A DNA stretch of 64,000 nt from Blepharisma stoltei ATCC 30299 (taxonomy: Eukaryota; Protista; Ciliophora). The notes beneath the pieces are model-generated. The model made no database searches and was not told the DNA's origin. It saw only the letters and a program-made list of their open reading frames with translations. Positions within the stretch are counted from its first letter, which is position 1, and the number at the start of each line of letters is the position of its first letter. Location of the stretch: assembly GCA_965603825.1 (NCBI GenBank), contig CBFDEM010000055.1:468925-532924 (forward strand). The letters are read 5' to 3'. Both the position numbers and the translations under genes were made by a program. This document shows positions 4,860 to 57,468 of the stretch, piece after piece.

Positions 4860-7800
4860 ATGTCTCTTATTAAAGCTTTAGAAGAAACTTTAAGATGTTG
4901 TCAACTCTCATGGTGAAAATTGATCCTGTTAATTTGTCTCCAGAATTTTTGTTATTCTTTAGAAGCTATTGTGGCTTATGAAAAAAATAACCCAATCTGA
5001 AGGCTAGATTTACTTTTGGATATATCCTCAGATTGAGATTCTCTCATAGAATGACACAATTGTGAATTTTTACAAATATCGACTTGCTTTGATTTTTATG
5101 AAAATTCTACTGTAATACTAGATTTAACAGATAGCATTGAAACTCAATTTTTTATTTCTAAATTATGCAAAGAAAGAGAAATCTCTCATTTGGTGTTTGA
5201 AAATAAGCTGGCTTATGCTGATCAGCTAACTTTCTCAATAACACCATCCTACTTAGAACAAATTAATGTCTTCATATCTGTCCTTAACTATTTTAATTGA
5301 ACTCAAGGTCTTATAGTTTATGATAGACTTGAAAATTCTCTAAAAGAAAAATTCGAAAAATATTCAGAAAATTTGAATTATTTGATTATTGAATCTGAGG
5401 CAAATATTGATGAGCTGGTAAATAGGATTATAGCTCCTCTCGGTACTACTCTTTATTACATTTTTATGAATTACACTGATTCATATAAATTGCAAAATGC
5501 TTTACTATCAGCTAAACTTTTAACCAGCGGCAATGGAATTGTTTTAGATCAAAAAAGCGGGTATGAATGTAGTATTGATGGGGCCTTGATTATTACAGAT
5601 AAAGGCCAAGAATTCGTCATTTCTGATGAAGATTATTTGAAATCATCAATAAAGAGCATAGTTTCTTATTTACTGAGTCACATAAGAACAGAAAGTAGCT
5701 CAGAAATATTTTTTCATCTAAATTCTCTCTTTAAAAGTCATTATGGCAATAGAAATTTTTCATTAATTAATACCCAAGAGGGGAAAAGAGAAATAATAGG
5801 AGAAATTATTGACGAAAAATTATTTTTATTCAAAAATATCACTTTTCCAGGCAATATATCAGAAATCCCGAAATCTCAGAAAAAAATTTTGCAGTTAAGC
5901 ATTGAAGCTGGCTCCACAAATCCTACAGGCCCAGCTCTTCCTATAGGATTAATCGGCGGATACGGCTCATATGCCGCTCGTGACATTATTAATAACGGAG
6001 ACTCTGATCTTCTCAATAATTTCCAAATTTCCCTTACAAATTTTGACTGTGGAGTATCAATTTATAATGCAACTTTTGCAAATACCTGTTATTCAAAAAA
6101 CAAAGAAAATTTCGGCCTAGGACACATCTCAGCCTGAGGGTCAGTCATGGCAATTGGATCAATGTCATCTTTTAAGCAGCTTAATTTAACATTCCCTATC
6201 GTCAGTGCTACCAATGGTGACACCACCTTAAGTTCCACCACAAATTTCCCTATGTATATGCGAGTCCAACTTTCCTATTCCTATGCATACTCTTTAGTCC
6301 CAATTTTTATCCGAGCTTTAGGATGGGAAAAAGTTGCAGTCCTTTACCAAAATGACACATGAGGACTATCAGGGTATTATTTTCTAATCCAAAGCATAAA
6401 AAGCCATGATCTCTCTTTAATCAACCCAGAAAGCAGCAGAGCTTTTCCACCAAATCTTGACAGAGATGGACTAAAAAAATACTCATATATTCTTCAAGAA
6501 ATTATTGACTGCCAAGCAAGGTTCTTAATTTTTATTTTTCAGTACCCATCAGCTTATTATATATTTGAAGAATTTTATGATTTAGGACTGAGAAAAGGAG
6601 ACTTGGTGTTTTTTACGACACTTACAGATTTAGTTACCCTAGCGGGGTATGATAATGTGCATAAATACAAAGTTTATGAAATTGCGATACCAATTATAAC
6701 GACCTATGGACAAAGCTGGGTTGGACCTTTAGGAACAAAAGCGTTAGCACATATTAATAAGGACTATGGAGGGATAATAAATTCATACAGCTGCTTTTAT
6801 TTTGATGCTTTATTTTTGATGGTTTATGCTTTAGATTATATGATAAATAGAGGGCTGGATTATTCTAACCCTTTTAAACTTCAAGAGATAATGAGAAATC
6901 AGCAGTTTTATGGGTGCACTGGACAAGTGATTATAGAAAAAGGGTCAAATGATAGGATTGTCCAAGTTTTTGAAATAATTCTTAATAAATTGGACGAAAA
7001 TGGAAATTTAGCTTATTATATTATGGGAGAGTTTCGGCCGCAAAGCACACAGCTTATAAAAATCCAAGAGCCTTTGCTATATGCAGATGGATCCACAGTA
7101 AAACCTACTGATTTAAGGAACAAAAATTATGAATGTCCTTTTCCTAACAGACTTGTAAAGACTTTTGCAAAAGGAAGAGCTTTGGTATTTGGGATTTGTT
7201 TTGGAATTGCAGGAATTTCGCTATTTATTACTATTTATATATGAAAAAGATGGTGGGAAATCTCTATAGAGCCTTTAGAAGCTAAAAAAGAAATCTCTTT
7301 ACAAGACTTTATTGTCGGCGCAACTATGTTTATTGAATTTTTCCAGTTTTCCTCTATGGGCCCTGATTTTTCGCCAATAAATTCTGCACTGGCCAGCGTA
7401 AGTGATACTCTTTCCCTAAGTCTGGACCATATTATTAAGCTCAAGAATGGAGTATTTTGAATTGTGGTTAATGCTGTATTCGGGTCTATTGGCTTATGAG
7501 TAATCCTATGCTCTGTAATTCTTCTTCGGCTTGACGAAAAATTCCCACACAATTTTATGCTCAGAAATCTGAACACCTTGGCTGATTATTTTATGCCAAT
7601 TTTAGGCGACCTATGCTTTATCCCATTTATTTCAGTCTGCCTTGACATTTTTTTATGTGACCAATCTATTGGAGATAATTTTACTGACAGTTTTCTTGCC
7701 CAAGACTGCTATTATTTTTGCTGGGAAGGTGAGCATTTAGCTTACGCAATTTTGTCGATTTTTGCTTTAATGGCTTATGAGCCTCTAGCTGTTTTTTGTA

Positions 7801-8297
7801 GACCTCTTTGACAAGAGCTTCAGCCTCTTTTGCATGTAAAAGCAGCTCCACTTTTTTTGATGGTAAAAACGATGGTTCAAATTACCTTAATTGTTATGAA
7901 TAAGACAGTCAAAAGAGCACAAAGCGCTCTTCATGGAGCTCTATTTATAACAGTGATGGTTTTATATATCATTTTTCTATGTAAATTCAAGCCTTATAAT
8001 TATGCAAGATACAGTTGATGGCAAACTTTGATTTTAATTGGAGTTGTATGACTTGCTTTTCTGTCGATAATTTCTCAGAATATTTGAGGCAATCCATTGA
8101 CTCTAACATTAATTTTGGGGTCAGGTTTGGTAATTATTGGATTAATTGGTATTTATATACAATATAAAAAATACCCAAGTCTATTGTTCCGTAAAAAGGG
8201 TCAAGATACATCTACTTTATTTAAATTTGCTTTTGCTTTTGGAAAAAATTCAAAAATTGCACTATCAAAAATTCATCCAAATATTGTCTCGAAGTAG
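4860..8297 (+). CDS. Receptor-array copy 1: signal peptide + 2 Venus-flytrap (ANF-receptor-like) domains + ~9 TM helices, 1145 aa
   Basis: ATG 4860 (MSLIKALEE...WWKLILLICL). All track fragments are in one frame joined by TGA; ends in TAG. VFT motifs FPIVSATNGD..LSS..NFPMYMRV, LGWEKVAVLYQNDTWG, FYGCTGQV.IEKGSNDR. Confidence 0.85.
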
Positions 8298-8869
8298 CTT
8301 GAAAAGTCTTTTATTGTTAATAATTTACTATCTTTATATATTATACATATATTCTGGCTTTCGAATTGCATTTCATTATTATAGTTATTCAAGAAATTAA
8401 GTAGTAATAAATTATTTATTTTGTGCTATATGAAATATTCTCATCTTCGTCCCTTAAACATTTTACTTCATTCTAAAAGATAGCATTAATGTGCAAATCT
8501 TCTCGACATACATAAGCATGTTTAAAGCTGCTTGGCCATATCATTTGCTTAATATCAAATAAATACTGACAAATTTTTATTAAATTTATTTTCTTTAATA
8601 GAGATTAATAAATGTTTAATTATTGTTGGATATCAATAGCATGTTAGAAAGACCCTGAAACAGAAACAAACTTCTTGCCAGAATTTTATTTTGCTCGGCT
8701 ATATTTGACCTATATTAGAATAAAATTTGCTAGTATTAGGAGGATTCAAAAATTGAGTATTACTTATTAACTAATACTTTAAATAAAAATTAGGTTTATA
8801 TTTAAATATAGAATATAATATAAAAAGCTTTCTCTTTATATAACTAATATTATCGGGACTTAATAAAAA

Positions 8870-11800
8870 ATGTCTCTCATTGAAAACTGTTCAATAAATT
8901 ATCGGACCATATGAAAATTGATATTCTTTATTTGTTTGCTGGATCGTTGCAAATGCTTAGAAATTATTGTGATTTATGAAAAAAGTAATATTGATTGAAA
9001 TTCACAACTGCTTATGAGTTCTCTGCCAGAGCCAAATTCTGTTGTTGAATTGCACAATTGTGAATTTTCAAATATTTCAGCTTGCTTTAATTATTATGAA
9101 AACTCTATTTTAGCGGTAGATTTAACAGAAAGCAGTAAAAGCCAATTTATTATTTCTCAAATATGCACAGTAAGGGAAATTCCTCACTTGGTGTTTGAGA
9201 ACAAACTCAGTTATTTTGATGAATGAACTTTCTCAGCTAAGCCTTCTTCACTAAGCCAGATTAATGCATTTATAGATGTTCTTATATATTTTGGATGGAC
9301 TCAAGGCCTCGTGATTTATGATGGATTTAAAAATACTCTAAGAGAAAACCTCGAAAAATATTCAGTAAATTTGAACTACTTGAATATTGAGCCTAAGGCA
9401 AACATTGAAGAAATAGTTAATAGAATTATAACCCCTCTTGGTGAGACTCTCTATTATATTTTTATGAATCCAACTGAGTCCTTAAAATTGCAAAATCTTT
9501 TGATGTCCACAAAACTTTTAACTTCTGGAAATGGAATTCTTTTGGACCAGAAAAGCGGATACCAGTGTATAGTTGAGGGTGCCTTAATTATTACTGAAAA
9601 ACCTCAAGAACTCATCTCTTCAGAAGAAAATTATAGAATATCAGCAATCGGAAGTGTAATCTCTTCCTTGCTAAAGTCCATTAAATCAGAAAATGCTTAC
9701 GAAATGCTATACCATCTAAACTTGCTGTCAAAAAACCATTATATTTTCAGAAATTTTTCCTTAATTAACATACAAAATGGTGAAAGAGTAATTGTTGGAG
9801 AAATCATTGATGGAAATTTATCCTTATTTAGCGATATAAATTTCTCAGGTAACTCTACAGATATCCCAAACTCAGCCCAAAAAATTTTGCATCTTAGCAT
9901 TGAAGCTGGCTCTACAAATCCTACAGGCCCACCAATTACTGTTGGATTAGTTGGAGGATATGGCTCATATGCTGCAATAGACGTCATAAATGAAGGCAAT
10001 ATAGATCTCCTCAATAATTTTCAAGTCGAGATGTTTAATTTTGACTGTGGAACCTCAATTTATAACTCCGCATTTGCTAATTCCTGCTATTTAAAAGATA
10101 AAGATAAATTTGGCCTGGGACATGTATCAGCGTGGTCTTCAGTTATGGCAATTGGGTCAATGAAATCTTTTAAAGAGCTTAATTTAACATTTCCTATTGT
10201 AAGTGCTACAAATGGAGACATTACCTTAAATTCAACAGCAGATTATCCAATGTATATGAGAGTTCAGCCTTCTTTTTCTTTTGAATACTCTTTAATTTCA
10301 ATTTTTATCCGCGCTTTAGGGTGAAAACAAATTGCAGTTCTTTATCAAAATGATTCTTGAGGACTATCAGGGTATCTTTATTTTTTAGAAGGAATTAAAA
10401 ATCATGATATCTCTATAATAAACCCAGAAAATAAAAGAGTTATTGCACCAGATCTTGACCGTGATGAAGTAAAGGAGTATTCAGGAGTTCTCCAACAACT
10501 GATAGATTGCCAGGCGCGATTTTTGGTTTCTATTTTACATTTTCCTACCGCTTACTATATATTTGAAGAACTCTACGATTTAGGACTGAGAAAAGGTGAC
10601 CTCGTCATTTTCACGACTGTAACTGATTTGGCTACTTTTGAAGCATATGATGATAAATATTTATACAAATTAAATGAAATTGCTGTACCTATGATTTCTA
10701 TATATGGGCAAAGCTGAGTCGGATCATTAGGGAAAAAAGCCTTAGATAGAATTTCTGAAGCTTATGGAGGATCAATAAACTCGTATAGCTGCTTTTATTT
10801 TGATTCAGTATTTTTAATTGCTTATGCGCTGGATTTTATGATTAATAGAGGATTAGACTATACTGATCCTAATAAGCTACAAAAAATTATGAGAAATATC
10901 CAATTTTATGGGTGTACTGGAAAAGTTAATATAGAAAAAGGGTCAAATGATAGGATTTTGCAGATATTTGAGATTATAGTAAATAAGCTTGATGCAAGTG
11001 ATAATATTACAACGTATATTATGGGCCAGTTTAAGCCTCAAAGTACACAATTGATAAATATCCAAGAACCATTAGAATATTCTAATGGTTCAACTACAAA
11101 GCCATCAGATTTAAGGACTAGTAGTAGCCAATGCCCTTTTCCTGATAAGCTTATAAAAACATTTGCTAAAGGTAGAATCCTAGTGTTTGGGATCTGCTTT
11201 GCCGTTGCCTTGATATCCTTTGCTATTACATTTTATATATGGAAAAAATGATGGAAATTTTCAATTGAGCCATTAACAGTAAGAGAAGAAATCTGCTTGC
11301 AAGACATTATTGTAGCTGTGACCATTATTATTGAATTTTTTCAACTTTCTTCAATGGGACCAGATTTTTCACCTATTAACTCTACACTGGCTGGAATTAG
11401 TAATTTTTTTTCGCTGAGCTTAGACAATATATTGAAATTAAGAAATGGAGTATTTTGAATTATTGTCAATGCTGTTTTCGGATCAATTGGGTTATGGGTA
11501 TTTCTGTGCTCAGTTGTGCTTCTTAGACTTGATGAAAAATTTCCTATGAGCTTTATTTTCAGAAATTTAGGTACTTTAGCAGAGTATTTGATGCCTGTTT
11601 TAGGCGATCTTTGTTTTATTCCCTTTATTTCAATTTGCCTTGATATTTTTTTATGTGATCAGTCGATTGGAGATAATTTTACTGACAGTTTTTTAGCAGC
11701 AGACTGCTATTATTTTTGTTGGAAAGATGAACATTTATTTTATGCAATTTTTTCTGTTATTGCTTTAATAGCTTATGAGCCCCTTGCAGTTTTTGGTAGG

Positions 11801-12343
11801 CCTCTTTGGCAAGAGCTGCAGCCCATTTTGCATGTAAAAGCAGTTCCACTATTTTTGATGGTAAAAACAATGATCCAAATTATATTAATTGTGATGAACA
11901 AGACAGTAAAAAGGGCCCAAAACCTCCTTCACGGAGCTCTTTTTATATTTGTGATGATCATATATATAGCTTTTCTTTATAAGTTCAAGCCTTTTAATTA
12001 TCAAAGATACAGTTGATGGCAAACTTTAGTCTCAGTTGGAGTTGTGTGGCTTGCTTTGATTTCAGTAATTGAGCAAAGTTCTGGAGTTAATCCTATATTT
12101 TTACTATCAGTTTTATGCTTTGGATTCTTAATCATTGGACTGCTAGGAGTATATGTTCAAAGAAAAAAATACCCTAGCCTTCTTTTTAGGAAAAAGGGTC
12201 AAGATACATCTAATTTATTTAAATTTGCCTTTACTTTTGGTAGGCATTCAAAAGCAGCTTTATCAAAAATTGTACCGAGTAGTTTACCAACGTCAGCAAG
12301 AAAATCACTTTCAGCGAGAAAAATTGAAAATCCTAGCCCTTAA
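8870..12343 (+). CDS. Receptor-array copy 2, 1157 aa
   Basis: ATG 8870 (MSLIENC), single frame with TGA=Trp, TAA stop, collinear with copy 1. Confidence 0.85.
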
Positions 12344-13224: not shown

Positions 13225-16200
13225 ATGATGTCTCTAATCAAAGATCTTGTGGAGAGATTGGTCTATCATAAATCCCTATGAAAATTCCTTTTATTTATCT
13301 GCTTGCTGAATGACTTAAACTGCTTAGAAATTATTTTGATATATGAAAAAAGCAACATCAGCATAAACAATATAGCGATTTCGAAGCTATTTGCTAAAAC
13401 AAACTCCCTTATTGAATGGCATTTATGTGAATATTCTACTGCAGCAATATGCCTTAGTTCTTATGAAAATGCTATGCTAGTTTTAGATTTAACGAATCGC
13501 ATCGAAACTCAGTTTTTTGTATCTGAGATATGTAAAGAAAGAGAAATCCCACACTTGGTGTTTGAAAATAAGCTAAATTATTTTGATAAATGGACTTTTT
13601 CAGTAAAACCATCACCCTTAAAAGAAATAAACGCTTTTATTGCTGTGCTTCGCTATTTTGGATGAACCCAAGGTCTTGCCATTTACGATGGATTTACGAA
13701 TATTCTAAAAGAAAATCTTGAAAAAAAAATTGAAAAACTAAATTTTTTAACAATTGAGCCCGATTCAAATCTGAATAAATTTGTTAACAGAATTATTACA
13801 CCTCTTGGTGAAACTCTTTACTATATATTTTTAGATTCTGTTGAGTCATTAAAACTTCAGAGCATTTTAAAGACCACAAAACTTCTTGCTAGTGGAAATG
13901 GAATTATTTTTAATCAGAAAAGTGGATATGAATGCATTATTGATGGAGCCTTAATTGTTGTCGCCGAAGGACAAGAATTAATATCTTCTGATGAAGAATA
14001 TATGGAATCAGTAATAGAAAATGCGATTTTTTACTTATTAAGCAATGTTAAAACAGAAAACAGTTTGGAAATTTTATTTTGGTTAAATACTCTATTAGAT
14101 AGTCAGAGCATAAATGAATTTTCTTTAGTCAATATTCAAAACGGAAAAAGAATAATAATAGGAAAAATCATGAATGAAAACTTATTTTTATTTAGCAACA
14201 TCACATTTCCAGGCAATTCAACAGAAATCCCAAAATCAACAAGAAAAGTGCTACAATTAAGCATCGAAGCTGGTTCTTCCAATCCATCAGGGCCACCTAT
14301 CACTATAGGAGCAGTTGGAGGGTATGGCTCATACGCAGCTTGTGACATAATTAACGAACAATGCTCAGGATTGCTTGATAATTTTCAGATCGATCTATTT
14401 AATTTTGACTGTGGTGTAACAATTTATAACTCCACATTTGCTAATGCTTGCTATTTAAAAGACCAAGAAAAGTTTGGCTTAGGACACATTTCAGCTTGGT
14501 CTTCAGCAATGACAATTGGGTCAATGAAATCTTTTGCAAAGCTTAATTTAACGTTCCCCATTGTAAGTGCTTCAAATAAAGATGCCATTTTTAATTCAAC
14601 CCCAAATTATCCAATGTACATGAGAATTCAGGCTTCATTGTCTTATATATATTCTTTAATCCCGATTTTTATCCGAGCATTAGGCTGAGAAAAAGTTGCT
14701 GTTCTTTACCAAAATGATACGTGAGGGCAATCTGGGTATTATTTTTTTACCCAGAGCATTAAAAGTCATGATCTTTTGTTGGCCAACCCAGAAAGCAGCA
14801 GAGTTATCCCGCCGAATCTTGATAGAGATGGAGTAAAAGAATACTCATATTTACTTCAAGAAATAATAGACTCTCAAGCAAGATTTTTGGTGTCTATTTT
14901 ACAATATCCGACTCCTTACTATATATTTGAAGAGCTTTATGATTTAGGGCTAAGAAAAGGAGATCTAGTTATTTTTACGACTGTTTCTGATATGACCACA
15001 TTTTCACAATATGATGGCGAATTCAGAAATAAAATATATGAAATTGCTATTCCAATTATTACTATATATGGACAAAGCTGAGTAGGGTCATTAGGAAAAA
15101 AAGCTTTATCAAGAATTTCAGAGGCATATGATGGTTTAATAAATTCTTACAGTTGTGTATATTTCGACTCAGTTCTTTTGATTTCTTATGCTTTGGATTT
15201 CATGATTAATAGGGGCTTAGATTACACAGATCCAGATAAATTGCAAAAAATAATGAGAAATCAGCAATTTTATGGGTGCACTGGACAAGTTAACATAGAA
15301 AAAGGGTCAAATGATAGGATTGTCCAAACATTTGAGATAGTGGCTAATAAGCTTGGCGAAAATGAAAATATTACATCTTATCTAATGGGATATTTTCGGC
15401 CTCAAAGTACACAATTAATAGCAATCCAAGAGCCTATGATATATGCTGACGGCTCAACCACAAAGCCATCAGATTTAAGGACTAGTAGTAGCCAATGCCC
15501 TTTTCCTGATAAGCTTATAAAAACATTTGCTAAAGGTAGAATCCTAGTATTTGGGATCTGCTTTACTGTTGCCTTGATATCCTTTGCTATTACATTTTAT
15601 ATATGGAAAAAATGATGGAAATTTTCAATTGAGCCATTAACAGTAAAAGAAGAAATTTGTTTGCAAGACATTATTGTAGCTGTGACCATTATTATTGAAT
15701 TTTTTCAACTTTCTTCAATGGGGCCAGATTTTTCACCTATTAACTCTACATTGGCTGGAATTAGTAATTTTTTTTCGCTGAGCTTAGATAATATATTGAA
15801 ATTAAGAAATGGAGTATTTTGAATTATTGTCAATGCTGTTTTCGGATCAATTGGGTTATGGGTAATTCTGTGCTCAGTTGTGCTTCTTAGACTTGATGAG
15901 AAATTTCCTATGAGCTTTATATTCAGAAATTTAGGTACTTTAGCAGAGTATCTGATGCCTGTTTTAGGAGATCTTTGTTTTATTCCCTTTATTTCAATTT
16001 GCCTTGATATTTTTTTATGTGATCAGTCGATTGGAGATAATTTTACTGACAGTTTTTTATCAGAAGATTGCTATTATTTTTGTTGGAAAGATGAACATTT
16101 ATTTTATGCAATCTTTTCTATTATTGCTTTAATTGCTTATGAGCCCCTTGCAGTTTTTTGTAGGCCTCTTTGGCAAGAGCTGCAGCCTATTTTACATGTA

Positions 16201-16677
16201 AAAGCAGTTCCACTCTTTTTGATGGTAAAAACAATTGTTCAAATTATATTAATTGTGATGAACAAGACAGTAAAAAGGGCTCAAAATCTCCTTCATGGGG
16301 CTCTTTTTATATTAGTGATGGGCCTTTATATTGGTTTTTTATTTAAATTCAAACCTTACAATTATCCAAGATTCAGTTGATGGCAAACTTTGGTTTCAAT
16401 TGGAGTAGGCTGGCTTGCCTTAGTTTCAGTTGTTGAGCAAAGTATTGATGCTGGCCCTATTATTTTATTATCAGTTTTGTGCTTTGGTTTCTTAATCATT
16501 GGATTTCTAGGATTATACATCCAAAGAAAAAAATATCCAAGCCTTCTTTTTCGAAAAAAAGGTCAAGATACGTCCAATTTATTTAGGTTTGCTTTTTCTT
16601 TTGGCAAACATTCGAAAGAAGCTTTATCAAAAATTGTCCCTAGTAGTTTAGCAAATTCATCAAGAAAATTATTATAA
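13225..16677 (+). CDS. Receptor-array copy 3, 1150 aa (probable chimera of the copy 4 and copy 2 lineages)
   Basis: ATG 13225/13228 (MMSLIKDL), single frame, TAA stop. Confidence 0.85.
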
Positions 16678-42138: not shown

Positions 42139-45100
42139 ATGTCCTACTTGAAAACGCCTGCAACACTTTTGAGTAGTCACTGGCTCCCTTTATGAAAACT
42201 GGTCATACTCATTTGTTTGCTAGATATTTATGTCTGCTTAGAAGTTATTGTGATCTACGAAAAAAGCAATATCTTTAGCCCAAACTTCTTATTAGGCTTA
42301 TCAGAAGAGCTTAACACCCTTTTTGAATGGCATGATTGCGAATATCCTGAAACTTTAAATTGCTTTAATTCATATGAGAACTCTATACTTATTTTAGACT
42401 TAACAGATCGTATTGAAACGCAGATTTTCGTTTTAAAGTTATGCGAAGAGAGAAAAATTCCTCATTTAGTGTTTGAAAATAAGTTGAACTATACTGACCA
42501 GTTAACTTTTTCGATATCACCATCTCCTTCAGATCAAATAAGTGCTTTCATTTCTGTTCTTCGCTATTTCGGGTGAACCCAAGGTTTGGTGATAAATGAT
42601 AAATTTGCAAGTCCTTTAAAAGAAAATCTTAAAAATTACTCAGAAAATTTTAATTTTTTAAAGATTGAATCTGGTGCAAATATCGATGAGCTAGTCAATA
42701 GAGTGATTACTCCTTTAGGCACAAATCTATACTACATTTTCTTGAGCACTTCTAAATCTTATAAAATACAAAAGGCTTTGATATCCACTAAACTTTTATC
42801 TAGTGGAAATGGGGTTGTTTTAGATCAGAAAAGTGGATATGAATGTATAATTGATGGAGCCTTGATAATTACTGTAAAAGGGCAAGAATTCAACACTTCA
42901 GACGAGGATTATATGAAAGCATTGATTGAAAGTGTATTTTCTGATATATTGAAGAGTGTTAAAAATGAAAGCAGCCTTGAAATCCTTTCTCAGTTAAAAT
43001 TTCTTTTAAAAAAACATCACATCAACAGAGACTTTTCTTTAATCAATATTCAAGGCGGCGAAAGAGTTATAGTTGGAGAAATTTTTAATGAAAAATTATC
43101 AATTTTCAGAAATATCACTTTTCCTGGAAATTCTGATGAAATTCCCAGGTCTGAGAAGAAAATTTTACGCTTAAGTATTGAAGCTGGCTCTTCAAATCCA
43201 ACAGGACCAGGGATTTTTATTGGTTTGGTTGGAGGATATGGCTCATACGCAGCTCAGGATATAATTAACGAAAGTGGTTCTGGCTTACTCACAAATTTTC
43301 AAATCGAATTATTTAACTTTGACTGTGGAGCAACAATTTATAATGCTACGTTTGCAAATGCATGCTACCTAAAAGATAAAGAAAATTTTGGCTGAGGTCA
43401 CATCTCAGCTTGAGGATCAGTAATGACAGTTGGCTCAATGGTCTCTTTCAAAGAACTCAATTTGACTTTTCCAATTGTAAGTGCTTCAAATGGAGATGCA
43501 GGACTTAGCTCAAAGGCTAATTACCCTATGTATATGAGGGTCCAGCTTTCAAACTATTACGCATTCTCATTACTTCCAATTTTTATCAGAGCTTTGGGCT
43601 GGCATCAAGCTTCAGTTCTTTACCAAAATGATTCCTGAGGATTATCAGCCTATGATTATTTAACCCGAGGTGCGAATAATCAGCACATACAATTAATCAA
43701 TTCAGAAGGCTGCAGAGCTATTCCACCAAATCTTGACAGAGATGGTGTTAAAAATTATTCACACCTCCTCCAAGACATCATTGATTCTCAGGCAAGGTTT
43801 TTTATTCCACTTGTGCAATTTCCAGCAATTTATTACATATTTGAAGAATTTTATGATTTAGGACTTAGAAAAGGAGATCTTGTTATTTCAGCACCGCTTG
43901 CAGATATTGTTCCACTTATAGGATATGACAACGCATATACATATAAATTATATGAAACAGGAGTTCCAATGGTAACTATATATGGCCAAAGTTGAGTTGG
44001 GCCACTTGGAGCCAAAGCATCGTCACAGATAGCAAAGGTTTATGATAATCAAAAGAACTCCTATAGCTGCTTTTATTTCGACTCAGTCTTTTTGATTGCT
44101 TATGCTTTGGATTTTATGATAAACAGAGGACTCGATTATACTAATTCTACTAAATTGCAAGAAACTATGAGAAATCAACAATTTTATGGATGCACTGGAG
44201 AGGTGATGATTGAAAAAGGGTCAAATGATCGAATTTTACAAACCTTAGAAATTTTTGCTAACAAATTAGATGAAAATGGAAACTTGACGACTTATATTGT
44301 TGGGCAGTTTAAACCTCAAAGCACACAGATTATAAAAATCCAAGAATCTTTGGTATATGCAGATGGATCGACAGCTAAGCCAACAGATCTAAGAAACACA
44401 GATTATAAATGCCCTTTTGCTACTAAGCTTGTAAGAACTTTTGCAAAAGGGAGGGCTTTAATTTTTGGAATCTGCTTTGTTCTTACCTTAATTTCTCTCT
44501 GCATTACCATTTATATATGAAAACGATGGTGAAAAATCTCAGTTGCTCCTTTAACTGTGAAAGAAGAAATTTCAATGCAAGATTTTATCATCGGAGCAAC
44601 GATTGTGGTTGAGTTTTTTCAATTTTGCTCGATGGGACCAGATTTTTCTCCTATAAACTACACATTGGCTGATATAAGCAATACCTTTTCTTTGAGTGTA
44701 GACAAAGCTTTAAATCAGCGGAACGGAATTTTTTGAATAGTTGTTAATGCTGTTTTTGGATCAATAGGATTATGAGTAATTCTATGTCTAGTTGTACTTC
44801 TACGACTAGATGAAAAATTTCCTACGAATTTTATATTTCGGAATTTAGATGCCTTTGCTGATTACTTTATGCCTATTTTAGGCGATTTGTGCTTTATTCC
44901 TTTTATTTCAGTATGTCTTGATATCTTCATATGTGATCAATCAATTGGAAATAATTTTACTGATAGCTTTCTTGCTCAAGATTGCTATTATTTTTGCTGA
45001 AAAGATGAGCATTTAGCCTATGCAATTTGTTCTGTGCTCGCTTTAATAGCTTATGAGCCTCTTGCAGTATTCTGTAGACCTCTATGACAAGAATTGCAGC

Positions 45101-45606
45101 CTCTTTTGCATGTAAAAGCAACTCCACTCTTTTTGATGGTAAAGACAATGGCTCAAATAGCCTTAATTGCTATGAACAAGACAGTAAAAAGAGCACAAAG
45201 CACTCTTCATGGTGGTCTCTTTATAGCTGTGATGATTTTTTATATTATTTTTTTATTTAAATTCAAGTCCTACAATTACTCAAGATTCAGCTTGTGGCAA
45301 ACTTTAGTTTCAATTGCAGTTGTCTGGCTTGCTTTTCTCTCAATACTAGCTCAGTGAACTGGAGGCAACCCAATAATAATGACATCTATTTTAATTTTAG
45401 GATTAGTAATTATAGCCTTGATTGGATTATATATTCAGCATAAAAAGTATCCAAGCCTCCTATTCCGTAAAAAAGGTCAAGATGAATCAAATTTGTTCAA
45501 GTTTGCATTTACTTTTGGCAAGACTTCTAAACTTGCTTTATCAAAAATTGTTCCAAGCGGAACATCAATGTCATCTCCACGAAAAATTGAAGATCCAAGC
45601 CCTTAA
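42139..45606 (+). CDS. Receptor-array copy 10, 1155 aa
   Basis: ATG 42139 (MSYLKTP), single frame with TGA=Trp, TAA stop. Confidence 0.85.
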
Positions 45607-45753
45607 AACGTTTACTGTTTAATATTTAAAATTTAATAAAGCCCAAGCATAAATGTTAAATGATGATATATATTATTATATACATTATAATATTTTTAAC
45701 GAAAAATTTTATAAAATATACCTTTAATTACAAAATGGCTATAATAAATTATT

Positions 45754-46528: not shown

Positions 46529-49500
46529 ATGTCTTGTATTGAAGATTTGACCAAAAATCTTTGTCTATCTCGATTTTATTGATGGAAATTAGGTCTATTT
46601 TCTTCTCTCTTATGTATTTGCAGCTCTCTAGAAATCATTGTAGTATATGAAGAAAGCAACTCATTTTGAAACTCAAATAAGTTTTTGAATTTGTCTGCAG
46701 ATATAAATTCCCTTGTAGAATTGCATTATTGCGAATACTCAGAAGCAGATAAATGCATTGATTTTTACGAAAGTGCTCTGCTAGTTTTAGACTTAACAGA
46801 CCTAATTGAAACTCAGTTTTTTATTTCAAAATTCTGCAATGAAAGGAAAATTCCTCATTTGGTTGTCGAGAATAAGCTCAATTATTTTGATCAGCTAACT
46901 TTTTCTACTACGCCATTGTATTTAGATAAGCTTAACGCCTTTTTGGCTGTCCTTCGATATTTTGGGTGACAAAAAGGACTTGTGATTGACGAAAAAATTG
47001 AACAGTCTCCAAAGGCTGAATTTCAAGCATATTCGGAAAGCTTCAATTATTTAACGATTGAATCTGGGTCAAACATTGATGAATTAGTCAATAGAATTAT
47101 AACCCCTCTTGGAACAACCTTGTATTATGTATTTGTGAACTCTACTGAATCTTATAAGCTGCAGGAAGCATTAATGGATAACAATCTTTTGATTGAAGGA
47201 AATGGAATTGTTTTAGATCAAAATAGCGGATATAACTGCCTAATTGATGGCGCCTTAATTATTACAGTCCAAGGCCAAGAGTTTTCTTACTCAAAAGAAG
47301 ATTATATTAATTCAACAATAGAATCTGTTTTTTCTTATTTGCTGAAAAACATTAAAACAGAAAGCAGTCTTGAAATTCTTTTTAGTAAATATCCAAAATG
47401 GGGAAAGGGTGGTAGCTGGAGAAATAATTAATGGAGAGTTATCCTTATTAAGCAAAATAACCTTTCCAGGCAACTCTCAAGAAATTCCAAAATCAGCCAA
47501 AAAAACGCTAAAAATAAATATAGAAGCTGGAGCTTCAAATCCGACAGGAGGGCTTATTACTGTAGGTAAAATTGGAGGATATGGCTCATTTGCTGCTTGT
47601 GACGTAATTAATGAAGCTGATTCAGGAATTCTCGACAATTTTCAGTTAGATTTATTCAACTTTGACTGCGGGACTACTATTTATAATGCAACTTTTGCAA
47701 ATATTTGCTACTTAAAAGACATCAGGAAATTCGGTCTCGGACATGTGTCTGCCCTAGGATCAGTTATGGCAGTCGGATCAATGAAATCTTTTAAACAGCT
47801 TAACTTGACCTTTCCTATAGTAAGCGCTACAACCGCAGATATCAGTTTAAGCTCTACAGCCAATTTTCCAAATTTCATGAGAGTTCAGCTTTCGAATTCT
47901 TATGGATATTCCTTAATCCCAATTTTTATTCGAGCTTTGGGATGGGAAAAATGTGCTATTCTTTATCAAAACGATACTTGAGGGGCATCTGGGTATTATT
48001 ATTTCAATCAGAGCATCCAAAACCACGATATCTCATTAATCAACTCTGAAAGCAGCAGAGCTATTCCTTCAAATCTTGATAGAGTAGGAGTCAAAGAAAA
48101 TTCAAAAATACTTCAAGATATTATAGATTGCGAAGCAAGATTTTTGGTTCTAATTTTACAGTATCCAGCAGCTTATTATGTATTTGAAGAATTTTATGAT
48201 TTGGGACTGAGAAAAGGAGATATGGTAATCCTAACCTCAATTAGTGATTTAATTTCTTTTTCAGCATATGATGGTGCATATAAGTACAAACTATACGAAA
48301 TTGCTATTCCTGTCATAACTTTGTATGGACAAAGCTGAGTAGGGAAATTAGGAGAGAAGGCTTTATCACAGATTTCGAATGCTTATGGCAACCAGAAGAA
48401 CGCTTATAGCTGTTTTTACTTCGATTCAGTCTTTTTGATTGCTTATGCTCTGGATTATATGATTAACAGAGGGCTTGATTATACTGATTCCGATAAGCTG
48501 AATAACATTATGAGAAATCAGCAATTTTATAGCTGCACTGGAGAAGTTATTATTGAAAAAGGGTCAAATGATAGAATTATGCAAGCCCTGGAAATAGCTT
48601 AAATAAGCTAGATGGCAATGGAAACTTAACCACGTATATAATGGGACAGTTCAAACCTTATAGTATTCAGCTCATTAGGATCCAAGAGCCTTTGGTATAT
48701 ACTGATGGCTCAGCAATAAAGCCACCAGATTTGAGAAACACTAATTATAAGTGTCCTTTCCCTAATAGACTAGTCAAAACTTTTACAAAAGGGAGGGCAT
48801 TGGTTTTTGGGATTTGCTTTGGTGTTGCTTTGGTTTCTCTTTTTATTACTATCTATATATGAAAACGGTGATGGAAAATTCCTATTGAGCCATTAATAGT
48901 AAAGGGAGAAATTTCACTGCAAGATTTTATTGTTGGGATTGCTATTATTGTTGAATTTTTCCAATTTTGCTCTATGGGTCCTGATTTCGAGCCAATAAAC
49001 TCTACCTTGGCAGAGATAAGTAGCACCTTTTCATTAAGTTTAGATAGTGTTTTAAAGCTACGAAACGGCGTATTTTGAGTTATCGTTGATGCTGTGTTTG
49101 GAGCAATCGGGCTATGGGTAATTCTTTGCTTAGTGATTCTTCTACGTCTTGATGAGCATTATCCTAGAATATCTATTTTTATGTACTTAGATGTCTTTGC
49201 TGACTATTTTATGCCTATTTTGGGTGATCTGTGCTTTATTCCGTTTATTTCTATTTGTTTAGATATCTTCTTATGTGATCAATCGATAGGAAATAATTTT
49301 ACAGATAGTTTTCTTGCCCAAGATTGTTATTATTTTTGCTGAAAAGATGAGCATTTAGCTTATGCAATTTTGTCAATATTTGCTTTAATAGCTTACGAAC
49401 CTCTTGCAGTATTTTGTAGACCTCTATGGCAAGAATTGCAGCCACTTTTGCATGTAAAAGCAATCCCACTCTTCTTGATGGTCAAGACAATGATTCAAAT

Positions 49501-49948
49501 AACATTAGTTGTAATGAACAAGACAGTTAAAAGAGCGCAAAGCACTCTTCATGGAGTTCTATTTGTATTAGTTATGATTTTGTATATTATTTTCCTTTTC
49601 AAATTTAAGCCGTACAATTATCCAAGATTCAGCTGATGGCAAATTTTGGTTTTAATCGGAGTTCTCTGATTAGCTATTCTCTCAATAATAGCTCAAAGTT
49701 TCGGGGGAGACCCATTTATTTTGACATCTATTTTAATATTCGGACTGATAATCATTGCTTTAATTGGAGTTTATGTCCAGCACAAAAAATATCCAAGTCT
49801 TTTATTTCGCAGAAAAGGGCAAGATACAACAAATTTATTTAAGTTCGCGTTTACTTTTGGGAAACATTCAAAAATTGCTCTAACAAAAATCAGTCCGAGC
49901 AGCCTTTTAAAATCCTCCTCCCAAAAAGCTGAAAATCAGAGTTCTTAA
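46529..49948 (+). pseudogene. Receptor-array copy 11, pseudogene
   Basis: ATG 46529. A ~41-nt frameshifting deletion at ~47383 (relative to copy 12) leads to TAA at 47429-47431; a second 1-nt deletion lies at ~48600 (gct-taa). Confidence 0.75.
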
Positions 49949-50994: not shown

Positions 50995-53900
50995 ATGTTT
51001 TTTATTGAATTTCATATAGCAGATTCAAGCTACGCTCAGCAACTTTGATGGAAGCTATTGCTTTTAATGTATCTGCTGCCTCTTTTCAGCTCTTTAGAAC
51101 TCATTGTTGTTTATCAAAAAAGCAGTTCACTTTTAGACTCAAATAACTTCTTGAATTTATCAGGAGATACAAATTCCCTTCTAGAATTGCATTACTGCGA
51201 TTATTCAGAGGCAGAAAATTGCATTTCATCTTACAAAAATGCCCTGCTGGTTTTAGATTTAACAGATCGTGTCGAGACACAGTTTTTAATTTTAGAATAC
51301 TGCAAGGAATGGAATACTCCTCATCTGGTTCTAGAAAATAAACTCAACTATTTTGATGAGCTAACTTTTTCGGTTACGCCTTCATCTTCTGACAAAATTA
51401 AAGCTATTTTAGCTGTCCTTCGCTATTTTGGATGGCAAAAAGGACTTGTAATATATGAAGAAATTGAGGAGTCGCCAAAGGCTGAATTTGAAAATTACTC
51501 TGCAGGGTTCAACTATCTAACAATTGAATCTGGGTCAAGCATTGAAGAATTAGTCAATAGAATTATTACCCCTCTTGGCACAACTATGTATTATGTTTTT
51601 ATGAGATCATCTGGGTCATATAAATTACAATTTGAATTATCTGATAATAAACTTTTAGTTGAAGGAAATGGGATTGTTCTGGACCAAAATAGCGGATATC
51701 AGTGCATAATTAACGGTGCATTGATAGTTACAGTTAAAGGCCAAGAGCTCTCGACCTCTGAGGACGAATATTTTAATAATGTGCTAGAAAGCTTTATGCT
51801 TTATTTGCTGGAACATGTCAAAACTGAAAGTAAGAAGGAAATTCTTTTTCAACTAAATTCTTTATTAAGCACAAATTTCAATTTTTCAGTAGTAAACATC
51901 CAGGATGGAGAAAGGGTAGTAGTTGGAGAAATCATCGATCAAGAATTCTCTTTATTAACCAATATAGCATTCCCAGGAGATACCCAAGAAACTCCAAAAT
52001 CTGCCAAAAAGATTTTGCTATTAAGCATTGAAGCTGGCTCTACAAATCCTACTGGCGCACCAGTTTATGTCGGCAAAATTGGAGGCTTAGGATCATATGC
52101 AGCTTGCGATGCAATTAATGAAGGCAGCTCTGGCTTACTTGACAATTTTCAACTCGAATTATTCAATTTTGACTGCGGAGCGACAATTTATAACGCCACA
52201 TTTGCAAATCCTTGCTATTTAAAAGATTCTGGAAAATTTGGGATTGCCCATGTAGCAGCGGCCGGATCAGGCATGGCTATCGGATCGATGAAATCTTTTC
52301 AGCAGCTCAACTTAACCTTTCCTATCGTTAGTGCTTCAAATGGTGATGTCAGTTTAAGCTCAACAGCGAATTTCCCAATGTATATGAGGGTTTCAGTCTC
52401 AAATTCCTATACATTTACCTTAATCCCTATATTTGTAAGAGCTTTGGGATGGGAGAAATGCGCTATTTTATATCAAAATGATACTTGAGGAAAATCTGGG
52501 TATTATTATTTCAATCAGAGCACCTATAATCATGACTTGGCATTAATAAACCCAGAAAGCAGCAGAGCAATTCCTCCTAGCCTTGATAGAGATGGAGTGA
52601 AAAAGTATTCGTATATACTCCAAGAAATTATTAATTCCAAGGCAAGGTTTCTAGTTTTCATCGTACTTGAGCCGTCTGCTTATTATATACTTGAAGAATT
52701 TTATAACTTAGGACTAAGGTCAGGAGATCTCATACTTTTAACGGCAGCTAATGAGTTGCTTTCTTTTTCTGGATATGACAATGCTTTTAAATATGAATTG
52801 CTAGAAATTGCTGTTCCTTTTCTAGCAATATATGGACGGAGCTGAGTCGAACCAGTAGCTTCAAAAGTTAAATCACTGCTAGCAAAGAGTTATGACAACC
52901 AAATTAGCCCTTACAGCTGCTATTATTTTGATGCTATATATCTAATTGCACATGCATTAGACTATATGATTGATAGAGGATTGGATTATACAGACCCAGA
53001 TAAACTGCAAAAAATCATGAGAAATCAGCAGTTTTATGGATGCACTGGAAAAGTTCTTATTGAAAAAAACACCAATGATAGAATTATGGAGTCCCTTAAT
53101 ATAGAAGTCAACAGTCAAAATAATGGAAATGTCACAACATTTTATATGGGTCTTTTTAAGCCTTATAGCACTCAGATTATTGAAATTACGAAGCCTTTGA
53201 TTTATGCAGATGGTTCAACAATAAAGCCATCTGATCTGAGAGACACTAATTATAAATGTCCGTTCCCTAATAAATCAATAAAGACTTTTGAAAAAGGGAG
53301 GGCATTGGTTTTTGGAATTTGCTTCGGTGTTGCTCTGATTTCACTTATTATTACTGTTTATATATGAAAACGATGGTGGAAAATCTCTATTGAGCCATTA
53401 ACTGCGAAAGAAGAAATTTCAACGCAAGATTTTATTGTGGGCGCAACCATTGTTATTGAATTTTTCCAATTTTCCTCAATGGGCCCTAATTTCTCTCCAA
53501 TAAACTCTACCTTAGCAGAGGTAAGCTACGCCTTCTCATTAAGCTTAATTAGCATTTTGAAGCTAGAGAATGGAATATTTTGAATTGTTGTAGATTCTGT
53601 TTTTGGAGCAATTATATTATGAGTAATTCTCTGCCTAGTAGTACTTCTACGGCTTGATGAAAAATTTCAGACGGTTTCTATGTTTAGATATTTGGATATT
53701 CTTGCTGATTATCTTATGCCTATCTTAGGAAATCTCTGCTTTATTCCCTTCATTTCAATTTGCCTGGATATATTTTTATGTGATCAATCAATTGGAGACA
53801 ATTTTACTGATAGTTTTCTAGCCCAAGACTGCTACTATTTTTGCTGGACAGGCGAGCATTTAGCTTATGCAATTTTGTCTGTATTTGCTTTAATAGCTTA

Positions 53901-54453
53901 TGAGCCTCTTGCAGTATTTTGCAGACCTCTATGGCAAGAACTGCAGCCTCTTTTGCACGTAAAAGCAGTTCCGCTGTTTTTGATGGTGAAAACAATTGTT
54001 CAAATAACTTTAATTGTGATGAACAAGACAGTGAAGAGGGCGCAAAGCACTCTTCATGGAGTACTCTTTTTATTAGTGATGGTTTTGTATATTATTTTCC
54101 TTTTTAAATTCAAACCGTACAATTATCCAAGATTCAGCTTATGACAAGCTTTAGTTTTAATTGGAGTCGTCTGGCTTGCTTTACTCTCAATAATAACTCA
54201 AAGCCTTGGCGGTAATGAACTACTTTTGACGTTTATTTTAATATTGGGGCTAATAATCATTGCTCTGATCGGAATTTATGTCCAACGTAAAAAGTACCCA
54301 AGTCTATTATTCCGTAAAAAAGGACATGACACTTCGACCTTATTTAAATTTGCTTTTACTTTTGGTAAACTTTCACAGAAGGCCTTAACAAAAATTTCTC
54401 CAAGTGTGCTATCTAAATCCTCAGCTCAAAAGGTTGAAAGCCAAAGTTCTTAA
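50995..54453 (+). CDS. Receptor-array copy 12, 1152 aa (most divergent intact copy)
   Basis: ATG 50995 (MFFIEFH...LWWKLLLL), single frame, TAA stop. Confidence 0.85.
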
Positions 54454-54897: not shown

Positions 54898-55041
54898 TAT
54901 CATCCGCACTAAAAATCATAATCTTTCTATAAGGTAAGCTAAAGATAAACTTGCAAAATAGATCTATTCTATTTTTTAAAAACAAAATAAGTATGACTTA
55001 GTGTATGTAGTTTATGTATGAGGAATCTTAAAGATGGTGTA
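54898..55041. mobile_element. IES-like insertion 1 (142 bp, TA-containing direct repeat TATCA)
   Basis: TATCA at 54898-54902 and 55040-55044; deleting 142 nt restores gaa gat atc aat tcc (EDINS), collinear with copies 11 and 12. Confidence 0.6.
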
Positions 55042-55759
55042 TCAATTCCATTCTAGAATTGCATTACTGCGAATATTCAGAGGAAGAAAATTGCATTTCA
55101 TCTTACAAAAATGCTCTGCTCGTTTTAGACTTAACAGATCGTATCGAGACACAGTTTTTAATTTTAGAATATTGCAAAAACACTAATATTCCTCATCTGG
55201 TTCTAGAAAATAAACTCAAATATTTTGATGAGCTAACTTTTTCAGTTACCCCGTTATCTTCTGAAAAAATTAAAGCGTTTTTCGCTATTCTTCGCTATTT
55301 CGGATGACAAAAAGGACTTGTTATAGATGAAAAAAATTGAAAAGCCACCAAAGTCTGTATTTGAAAATTGCTCTCCAAGCTTTAACTATTTGATGATTGA
55401 GTCTAGGTCAAATATTGAATAGCTGGTCAATAGAATTACTAACCCTCTTGGCACAACTATATTATGTTTTTATGAGCTCATCTGGGTCATATAAATTACA
55501 ATTTGAATTATCTGAAAATAAACTTTTAGTTGAAGAAAATGGGATTGTTCTTGACCAAAATAGCGGATATCAGTGTATTATTGACGGTGCATTGGTAGAT
55601 GCAGTTAAAGGCCAAGAGTTTTCAATCTCAATTAAGTTTATATCAATTCAACAGTAGAGGGATTACTTTCTTATTTGCTAAAACATATTGAAGCCGAAAA
55701 CAAAATTGAAATACTAGATCAGTTAAATTCCTTGTTTAGCAAAAATTTTAATTTTTCAC

Positions 55760-55867
55760 TATACTGCTTTTAAAGACTTCGCCGCCAATTTTTTAATTCA
55801 TCAAGCCCTAGTAAACAATTGATGACTAATTTAAAATAAAAATTATTTATAGAGAAATCTGAAAATA
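55760..55867. mobile_element. IES-like insertion 2 (106 bp, TA-bounded)
   Basis: TA at 55760-61 and 55866-67; deleting 106 nt restores tca cta ata agc atc caa (NFSLISIQDG vs NFSVVNIQDG in copy 12). Confidence 0.6.
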
Positions 55868-56545
55868 ATAAGCATCCAAGACGGAAAGAGGTTTTTAGTT
55901 GGAGAAATCATCAATCAAGAATTATTTTTATTAAGTAATATAACATTCCCAGATGATACCCAAGAAACTCCAAAATCTGCCAAAAAGACTTTGTTATTAA
56001 GCATTGAATCTGGCTCTACAAATCCTACTGGCACATTTGCTACTGTTGGCAAAATTGGAGGATACAGTTCATATGCTGCTTGCGACGTAATTAATCAAAA
56101 TGACTCTGGCTTACTTGACAATTTTCAACTCGAATTAATCAGCTTTGACTGCGGAGCAACTGTTTATAACACAACATTTCCGAATGATTACTACTTAAAA
56201 TATAAAGACAAGTTTAGGCTTGCTCATGTTGGAGCTGCAGGGTCAGGTATGGCTATCGGATCGATGAAATCTTTTCAGCAGCTCAACTTAACCTTTCCTA
56301 TCGTTAGTGCTTCAAATGGTGATGTCAGTTTAAGTTCAACAGCGAATTTCCCAATATACATGAGAGTTTCAGTCTCAAATGCTTATGCATATACATTGAT
56401 CCCAATTTTATAAGAGCTTTGGGATGGGAGAAATGCGCTATTTTATACCAAAACGATACTTGATGAAAATATGGATATTACTATTTTAATCAGAGCGCAT
56501 ATAGTCATGCACTAGAAATTATCAATCCAGAAAGTAGTAGAGCTA

Positions 56546-56797
56546 TAGCTTGAAAATTATTTTAGCTTGGGCTAAGACTTTGATGCTTCTTAACTAGCCA
56601 GGAATCTGGCTTTGTTTCATTAGGTGATTAGTCAGCCCATGAATTGGTAATAAAGCTTGTGATCGATATTTATTAATTTGCAAAGTAGATACAACTCAAA
56701 AATCGCTAAAGCAATATATAAATTAAAGTTTTAGAATGGAAGCAAATATAAGCATAATAGAGCCTTCTTGCAAAAACTATTATTATATTTCAAGATA
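56546..56797. mobile_element. IES/MITE-like insertion 3 (~250 bp, TA ends, short terminal inverted repeat)
   Basis: Left end TAGCTTGAAA vs reverse complement of right end TATCTTGAAA (9/10 match). The interior is non-homologous to the array and sits at the junction of the large deletion. Confidence 0.5.
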
Positions 56798-57330
56798 ATT
56801 TGGCAAGAACTGCAGCCTCTTTTGCTTGTAAGAGCAGCTCCACTATTTTTCATGGTAAAACAATTGTTCAAATAGTCTTGGTTGCTATGAACAAAACATC
56901 AAAAAGAGCTCAAAGCACCCTCCATGGAGCTCTTTTTGTATTAGTGATGATTTTGTATATTGTTTTCCTTTTCAAGTTCAAGCCGTACAATTATCCAAGA
57001 TTTAGCTGGTGGCAAGTCTTGACTTCAGTTGGAGTTATCTGACTCGTTTTACTCCCAATAATAACTTAAAAAAAATTTGAAGGCACTCTTATATATACAT
57101 CTTTACTGATATTGGGATTTATTGTCATTGCCCTAATTGGAGTTTATTTTCAACGTAAAAAATATCCAAGTCTACTATTCCGCAAGAATGGCCATGATGC
57201 ATTCATTCTATTTCAGTTTGCTTTTGCTTTTGGCAATCATTCAAGAGCAGCTCTTTCAAAAGTTGCTCCAAGCGGATCATCATCTTTGCAACACCGAAAA
57301 ATAGAAAGTCATAGTTCTTAATTTACCTCT

Positions 57331-57468
57331 GGAAAAAGCCAAGCTATATCAACTTTGCTTTGACTGTTACTTTTGGAAAGGCTGGATTCAAAGAGGCTAT
57401 TAGCAAAAATTACTCCAAGGATGCTGTCAAAATCTTCAGCTCTAGGCATTCAAGATCATATTTCTTAA
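57331..57468 (+). pseudogene. Relic of a further receptor 3' end
   Basis: Degenerate match to the copy 12 tail KKGHDTSTLF..FTFGK..KALTKISPSVLSKSSAQ...S*. Confidence 0.6.

Follow-up and report, generated by a model that had tools for sequence, protein, structure and literature searches.

What kind of protein is encoded by a tandem array of 13 similar genes close to a telomere of the ciliate Blepharisma stoltei ATCC 30299? The array lies in the last 64,000 nucleotides of the macronuclear contig C55 (CBFDEM010000055.1, positions 468,925 to 532,924), a stretch referred to below as the window, whose own numbering is used throughout; base 532,924 is the last base of the contig, and the window is therefore its telomere-proximal tip. 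An earlier sequence-only reading of the window had described the genes as an expanded, chemoreceptor-like repertoire with two Venus-flytrap domains on a membrane part of about nine transmembrane (TM) segments, fitting none of mGluR/GABA-B, iGluR or receptor guanylyl cyclase and not recognised as described in a ciliate. The analysis reported here showed that each intact protein consists of a leader, a first domain of the type 1 periplasmic-binding protein (PBP1) fold, a second flytrap, a linker of about 20 residues with one invariant cysteine, a nine-helix membrane module and a basic tail. We interpret the genes as plasma-membrane sensors of small soluble ligands, forming a local array of a very large heterotrich chemoreceptor repertoire, and give this interpretation a probability of roughly 0.55.

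The array and its genetic code

Gene copies were located by tblastn with genetic code 4 and copy 7 as the query, and for proteins containing TGA codons the searches used either pieces free of TGA or database entries whose sequence equalled the code-4 translation. Thirteen co-oriented copies were found between 4860 and 57315, all on the plus strand, with a mean spacing of 4194 bases between start codons, in agreement with the 13 paralogs of about 1150 aa at intervals of about 4.2 kb reported in the sequence-only reading. The same reading had attributed the poor open reading frame (ORF) track to TGA codons, and translation of TGA as sense did convert the fragmented track into a series of ORFs of about 1150 codons. 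Fifteen of the 17 conserved tryptophan columns mixed TGA and TGG among the ten intact paralogs, indicating that UGA encodes tryptophan, as published for B. stoltei (PMC9942806).

Ten of the 13 copies were intact and encoded proteins of approximately 1142-1157 aa: copies 1 (4860..8297, 1145 aa, public model P0185), 2 (8870..12343, 1157 aa, P0188), 3 (13225..16677, 1150 aa, P0177), 4 (18110..21559, 1149 aa, P0174), 5 (21884..25342, 1152 aa, P0187), 7 (29552..33013, 1153 aa, P0179), 8 (33898..37326, 1142 aa from the first ATG, P0189), 9 (37932..41402, 1156 aa, P0186), 10 (42139..45606, 1155 aa, P0191) and 12 (50995..54453, 1152 aa, P0178), with copy 12 diverging most within the array. Copy 7 served as the reference for all models. 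The code-4 translations of these ten copies agreed at every residue with the public B. stoltei gene models, which contain no introns; only the model of copy 8 starts later, 37 residues downstream. Pairwise identity between intact copies was 61-78% which, together with ratios of nonsynonymous to synonymous substitution rates (dN/dS) of 0.11-0.21, rules out a chance pattern.

The remaining three copies were broken. Copy 6 (25754..29111) had two frame changes, near 26165 and at 26720-26770, no in-frame stops, and a public model (P0199) shortened to 694 aa; the second change adjoins a run of nine adenines (26763-26771), and the copy is either a young pseudogene or the product of a homopolymer assembly error. 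Copy 11 (46529..49948) had two frame changes, near 47378 and 48598, and its matched pieces were likewise free of in-frame stops. All of these changes were shifts of 1-2 bases. Tiny introns were considered as their cause and rejected, as no gap separates the pieces, which are directly adjacent or share a few bases. Given the absence of in-frame stops and the position of one change beside the adenine run, the frame changes may be errors of the assembly, and copies 6 and 11 intact genes instead of pseudogenes. Copy 13 (55041..57315) was a dead remnant in three frames with at least 11 stops: the middle part of the gene, about 400 codons, was deleted (residues ~557-970 absent), and additional sequence was present between the matched pieces.

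Two flytrap domains outside the membrane

The ectodomain and the membrane part were each compared with databases by means of an alignment of 50 family members per region, comprising window proteins, other B. stoltei paralogs, Stentor proteins and environmental sequences. In copy 7 the protein begins with a basic N-terminus followed by a hydrophobic stretch (residues 1-33, 29552..29650, plus strand as for all parts of this gene), the hydrophobic leader seen previously, which is a putative signal peptide.

The second domain (residues 338-750, 30563..31801) was a canonical Venus-flytrap. PF01094 (ANF_receptor), the receptor ligand-binding family to which the motifs of this domain had been assigned, scored 60.4 bits on residues 72-616 of copy 7 (gathering cut-off 25.4) and was present in all eight full-length relatives tested (35-176 bits). 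It was the only Pfam family found in the TGA-free window pieces and the eight full-length relatives, where it covered residues ~350-700. The domain had the two-lobed PBP1 fold, and its profile matched the flytraps of the class C G protein-coupled receptors (GPCRs) T1R, mGlu3, GABA-B1 and CaSR with E-values of 1e-19 to 1e-15. The sequence motifs that had first drawn attention to the family were all present within 0-5 substitutions; the spacing of one had been given wrongly and should read IN-x6-LLxNF-x7-FDCG.

The first domain (residues 34-337, 29651..30562) had been described as a degenerate copy of the same fold, and the profile comparisons argued for this description. Its PBP1 match remained under the Pfam threshold, but its profile aligned with that of the second domain (hhalign probability 96%, E = 2.4e-9, 263 columns) and with the amino-terminal domain of the NMDA receptor subunit GluN1 (E = 5e-11, in two stretches jointly covering the domain), and strands and helices alternated in it in the full-length model. 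These two profile matches support two flytraps in tandem, the first being a divergent PBP1 domain most similar to the amino-terminal domain of ionotropic glutamate receptors (iGluRs). Between the second flytrap and the membrane (residues ~733-766) there was a single cysteine, the invariant Cys756 of a CPF motif; the linker therefore has no cysteine-rich (nine-Cys) domain, as the sequence-only reading had noted.

A nine-helix membrane module under strong constraint

About nine hydrophobic segments had been counted in the C-terminal part, and both models made of it gave nine TM helices. Residues 751-1125 modelled alone, with 50 sequences, formed nine long helices (predicted local distance difference test, pLDDT, 89.7; predicted template modelling score, pTM, 0.87) with a structured loop joining helices 4 and 5, and the model of the full-length protein (pLDDT 87.3) repeated the same nine helices. 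In copy 7 the linker and module span residues 751-1105 (31802..32866), with helices at residues ~767-795, 811-830, 862-885, 896-926 and 955-984 (TM1-TM5) and ~994-1017, 1019-1040, 1046-1072 and 1076-1101 (TM6-TM9). The protein ends in a basic, cytoplasmic tail with short amphipathic helices (residues 1106-1153, 32867..33010); the last 50 residues contained 8-12 lysines and arginines and 1-4 aspartates and glutamates, in line with the basic tail described before.

With the ectodomain set outside, 15 lysines and arginines fell in the inside loops and tail and 5 in the outside loops, and all four invariant cysteines were placed outside: Cys756 in the linker and Cys930, Cys947 and Cys951 in the TM4-TM5 loop. 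Both features fit a predicted topology with the N-terminus outside and the C-terminus inside. Two N-x-T sequons (NST and NKT) were also on the outside, and a conserved KPYNY-R loop (TM7-TM8) and the basic tail on the inside. D813, Q826, H956 and Q1004 were invariant or near-invariant polar residues within helices.

Purifying selection was found in all parts of the protein and was most pronounced in the membrane module, its most conserved part (dN/dS 0.11, compared with 0.16 in flytrap 2 and 0.21 in flytrap 1). Pairwise dS among intact copies was about 1.2, and the duplications are therefore old.

This conserved module resembled no defined family directly. It matched no Pfam family in any of the 50 members at E-values up to 10, PF00003 (the seven-helix bundle of class C GPCRs) and PF06011 (a fungal membrane-protein family discussed below) included; the TGA-free pieces of the membrane part gave no Pfam match either. 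The module profile matched no PDB sequence at E-values up to 10, and a Foldseek search of the PDB with the module model returned nothing under E = 0.1, that is, no solved structural relative.

Comparison with known receptor classes

The class C GPCRs (mGlu, GABA-B, CaSR, T1R) differ from the array family, which has flytraps in tandem and a nine-helix module, no cysteine-rich domain (also lacking in GABA-B), no match to the 7tm_3 family (PF00003, 0 of 50 members) and no fit to a 7-TM structure: where an alignment with an mGlu or GABA-B receptor entered the membrane part, the root mean square deviation (rmsd) was 11-20 Å. More than seven helices and no class C bundle had also been the expectation of the sequence-only reading.

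The iGluRs and the plant glutamate receptor-like proteins (GLRs) share with the array family a first domain similar to the GluN1 amino-terminal domain and two clamshell layers above the membrane part, and AtGLR3.4 was the only direct phmmer match of a window piece in the PDB. In the array family, however, the second layer is of the PBP1 type instead of the split PBP2 type (S1S2), is uninterrupted by membrane segments, and is followed by a C-terminal membrane part of nine helices without the Lig_chan pore. Natriuretic-peptide/guanylyl-cyclase receptors also carry a PF01094 ectodomain, but have one TM helix followed by kinase-homology and cyclase domains, whereas in the array proteins nine helices precede a tail of about 50 aa. 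The Pfam scan of full-length members detected no Lig_chan, kinase or cyclase domain, in agreement with the earlier claim that the tail carried neither cyclase nor kinase. Membership of the class C GPCRs, the iGluRs and the cyclase receptors is thus excluded.

The overall plan is shared by the fungal PF06011 proteins (Pkd2, Trp663 and Trp1322 of Schizosaccharomyces pombe, Flc1-3, and TrpR of Aspergillus nidulans), in which a signal peptide and an N-terminal domain on the outside are likewise followed by nine membrane helices, in a domain of roughly 365-405 aa, and by a cytoplasmic tail, but whose ectodomain is Ig/ML-like and lipid-binding where the array family has a double flytrap. The best relatives of the module at sequence level were B. 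stoltei PMP-repeat proteins (contigs C39, C35 and C30), which likewise occur in tandem arrays. They differ in having unrelated ectodomains (beta-helix PMP repeats, furin-like or laminin-G domains) and a cysteine-rich stalk (Ephrin_rec_like/DUF7630) at the position where the array family has a single cysteine.

Probable remote relatives of the membrane module

A remote link between the module and PF06011-type proteins was suggested by several comparisons. Among shape matches in the ESM Atlas, the highest (TM-score 0.61 over 301 of 375 residues) was to a cluster with Ephrin_rec_like in 72% and PF06011 (TRP) in 11% of its members, followed by a DUF7630/leucine-rich repeat (LRR) cluster and a chlorophyte cluster (both 0.59), and the feature search of the same resource gave PF06011 as a weak lead (score 0.86). 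The PF06011 model (gathering score 28.5 bits) run over the genome matched 25 loci, none of which belonged to the double-flytrap family. Most were arrays on C43, C39, C35 and C30: the tandem families lie at 498-545 kb of C43 (loci L005-L010), on C39 (L011, L012, L016, L017), C35 (L013) and C30 (L015, L018), with a further locus on C25 (L019). Sixteen of the matching regions were translated with code 4 for comparison and encoded proteins of 900-1280 aa, each with a C-terminal multi-helix module. Their ectodomains were PMP-repeat, furin-like, laminin-G, Ephrin_rec_like or DUF7630, so that unrelated ectodomains stood on the same chassis.

The module profile aligned with the combined set of PF06011 loci with an hhalign probability of 90% (E = 1.6e-6) and with the PMP/DUF7630 group alone with 89% (E = 2.6e-6, 149 columns), the alignments spanning 138-149 columns; reversed-sequence controls remained below 1%. 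The alignment with the PMP/DUF7630 group brought together a C..CW..H motif of the outside loop and the KPY..N motif of the inside loop. The PMP-repeat/DUF7630 proteins themselves matched PF06011 only sub-threshold, and in hmmsearch the module profile scored only marginally on four PF06011 loci. By the Pfam criterion the module is not a member of PF06011; profile and shape comparisons suggest that it is remotely related and not an orphan. We conclude that it is probably part of a broad class of protist nine-TM surface receptors at the edge of PF06011.

In S. pombe Pkd2 the membrane domain, with nine helices, measures 405 aa and lies between an outside domain, itself preceded by a signal peptide, and a cytoplasmic tail (10.1101/2022.08.11.503631); the calcium permeability of Pkd2 was reportedly examined by in vitro reconstitution (PMC9727806). 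PF06011 proteins of Aspergillus and Cryptococcus have been tied to calcium homeostasis (PMC8618638, PMC9600462).

Family size, distribution and age

With a 173-aa piece of the module as the query, 226 candidate loci were obtained from the genome assembly (64 contigs, 41.46 Mb), of which at least 150 were family loci (E < 1e-28), mostly in tandem runs on many contigs. For many of them a contig start was no more than 100 kb away (C1, C11, C21, C22, C23, C24, C38, C51, C59, C63 and C64). Family loci at 7781-8281 and 32653-33114 of C1 had counterparts with identical scores at nearly equal offsets of C23 (7767-8267 and 32635-33096), which suggests that the starts of these two contigs are duplicated or are alternative isoforms of a single region.

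A piece of the double flytrap matched 274 proteins in a library of 1.84 billion representatives, most of them 1100-1200 aa long and with the same three-part layout. The named sources were only B. stoltei and Stentor coeruleus, with no member found in any other named organism of that library; the remaining matches came from metagenome contigs. Four Stentor genes were found (SteCoe_30052, 6415, 11760 and 37407). One of the metagenome contigs, k141_145899 of the ENA (locus L021; 121 kb, gene-dense and ciliate-like), carried a single family copy, surrounded by housekeeping genes and 9 kb distant from a P2X-receptor gene; the family member was called intact by the gene caller of the source and is therefore without in-frame TGA.

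In a FastTree phylogeny the ten intact copies formed one clade with full support, and its sub-clades reflected the positions of the genes along the array, with copies 2-5 and copies 7-10 as groups and then copy 1 and copy 12. Two of the Stentor proteins, SteCoe_30052 and SteCoe_6415, were included in the tree and were placed in two deep clades, and the family is therefore older than the split between Blepharisma and Stentor; it has been greatly expanded in Blepharisma.

No previous functional description of the family was found in the genome paper (PMC9942806), from which the words receptor, ligand and gene family are absent, nor in the searchable literature on Blepharisma, Stentor or ciliate receptors, flytraps, gamones and PF06011. 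The UniProt name, "Receptor ligand binding region domain-containing protein", is automatic only. The sequence-only reading had named three findings that would speak against it, namely a 7-TM bundle, the lack of a PBP1 fold in the first ~330 residues and an existing functional description; none of these was obtained.

Proposed function and alternative explanations

We infer a chemoreceptor role from the architecture described above, together with the selection pattern, the polar residues conserved within helices, the link to PF06011-type modules and the size of the family. That the proteins are receptors for soluble ligands is probable. Flytrap 2 would close on a small ligand, while flytrap 1 may serve in assembly or modulation, as the amino-terminal domain of iGluRs does. 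The movement would be relayed through the short linker, whose cysteine is probably engaged in a putative disulfide with the cysteine loop between TM4 and TM5, into the nine-helix module, which may either conduct cations (most likely Ca2+) or signal through a conformational change. Ligand diversity would arise from the divergence of the ectodomains among paralogs. An ionotropic (channel) output is doubtful and is put forward only tentatively. Its most specific form, in which the proteins would be ligand-gated, Ca2+-permeable chemoreceptor channels, the first ligand-gated members of the Pkd2/Flc type of nine-TM proteins and a fourth independent wiring of a flytrap to an effector, is a speculation that we regard as unlikely.

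Several observations weigh against the proposed function. The module could merely be an anchor or trafficking chassis common to many surface proteins. The PF06011 link is indirect, as all 50 members lack a match to that family; the aligned stretch is limited to TM4-TM8; the C43 group, which contains the best PF06011 matches, reached an hhalign probability of only 0.7% when that group alone was compared with the module; and the PF06011 proteins are themselves putative channels. In the ectodomain, the position of the mGlu "SYAST" motif, a loop binding the alpha-amino and carboxylate groups of glutamate, read SAxNGD in the array copies when this short motif was aligned by eye; in the same by-eye alignment the threonine of the mGlu2 motif faced a glycine and the neighbouring position varied between paralogs. 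The class C residues that grip the alpha groups of amino acids therefore seem not to be conserved, and the ligands need not be amino acids. Regarding transcription, none of the runs recorded as RNA contained the gene, and the four small runs that contained 27-40% of its words came from one study and were of guessed RNA type. The contigs of these four runs count in favour of the proposed function: they covered coding parts of copies 6, 7 and 8 and none of nine intergenic bins in each run, a coding-only pattern that low-level transcription would give, and which suggests it.

The main rival, which we consider rather unlikely, is a ligand-binding receptor whose nine-helix module does not conduct, acting instead as a conformational relay to cytoplasmic partners through the KPYNY-R loop and the tail, or controlling endocytosis. 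The conservation of the TM7-TM8 loop on the inside and of the tail motifs PSLL and LFxFAF across 50 divergent members speaks for such a relay, as does the lack of a match of the module to any pore-like family or solved channel; no signalling domain or docking motif was recognisable, however, and the conserved polar residues within helices, together with the very strong constraint over the whole module, suggest more than a relay. As a nutrient transceptor or uptake system, the flytraps would capture amino acids or other nutrients in the manner of bacterial LivJ-type binding proteins and pass them to a nine-TM transporter. This is very improbable: none of the 50 members matched a transporter family in Pfam, the Foldseek matches, with E-values above 0.1 and TM-scores of 0.1-0.2, were at the level of noise, and more than 150 divergent paralogs suit sensing better than uptake.

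Recognition between cells or mating partners, with the proteins acting as gamone receptors or as variable surface or adhesion proteins in place of general chemoreceptors, appears improbable. Gamone 2, a mating pheromone, is a small tryptophan-derived molecule, and as such a plausible flytrap ligand, and the arrays near contig ends, their birth-and-death turnover and the breakage of three of the 13 copies would be in keeping with such a role; but dN/dS values of 0.1-0.2 and a dS of about 1.2 are unlike antigenic variation, and more than 150 genes are not explicable by two gamones. It is scarcely credible that the family consists of divergent class C GPCRs or iGluRs with a miscounted membrane part. 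The ectodomains do resemble both families, but PF00003 and the Lig_chan families were unmatched in every member tested, nine helices were obtained in two independent high-confidence models, the structural alignments entering the membrane were as poor as stated above, and the module had no PDB sequence match at E = 10. Sensing of soluble ligands by a flytrap receptor with a nine-helix module continues to be our preferred reading.

The chromosomal surroundings of the array

The array had been called subtelomeric, and this is correct on the assembled contig C55, where it is followed by a kinesin gene, a 1.5 kb AT-rich spacer and the telomere. The kinesin gene (57753-60887, plus strand; 1045 codons, two of them TGA) codes for a protein in which DUF4472 and a GAS-like coiled coil come after a kinesin motor. 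The telomere (62390..64000, about 1.6 kb) consists of 8-base repeats of GGGTGTTA up to the contig end, a permutation of the published B. stoltei telomere unit CCCTAACA (PMC9942806). Two irregular units were present in the otherwise perfect repeat array, at 62829-62838 and 63940-63946; one has an additional G and the other is TATGGGTG. The published macronuclear assembly of the strain comprises 64 telomere-to-telomere contigs (41 Mbp), and its authors cautioned that Blepharisma has numerous alternative telomere addition sites (PMC9942806). Upstream of the array, a Band_7/SPFH gene (216-1136, plus strand) and a 918-codon ORF with TGA as sense (1329-4082, minus strand) were found; three pieces of the latter were tested and gave no Pfam match.

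Significance for ciliate chemical sensing

Little is known about chemical sensing in ciliates, and no GPCR had been demonstrated in any ciliate at the time of a Tetrahymena study, according to its authors (PMC3226668). The double-flytrap family makes up very roughly 0.5-1% of the genes (an estimate) of a 41-Mb genome, and the combination of a well-understood binding domain with a confidently modelled membrane module makes its function directly testable. Flytraps are otherwise wired to a 7-TM bundle, to the iGluR pore or to a cyclase; the nine-helix module is a fourth kind of membrane partner. Since in one genome this chassis bears double flytraps, PMP beta-helices, and furin-like or laminin-G domains, the nine-TM chassis, a probable relative of Pkd2/Flc, may serve protist surface receptors in general as a signal-transducing module, as these data suggest; if so, it would inform the disputed function of fungal Pkd2/Flc proteins. 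If the proteins were indeed ligand-gated Ca2+ channels, the 150 or more genes would constitute the "nose" of Blepharisma, feeding Ca2+ straight into ciliary and contractile responses, and one clade might hold the long-sought receptor of gamone 2.

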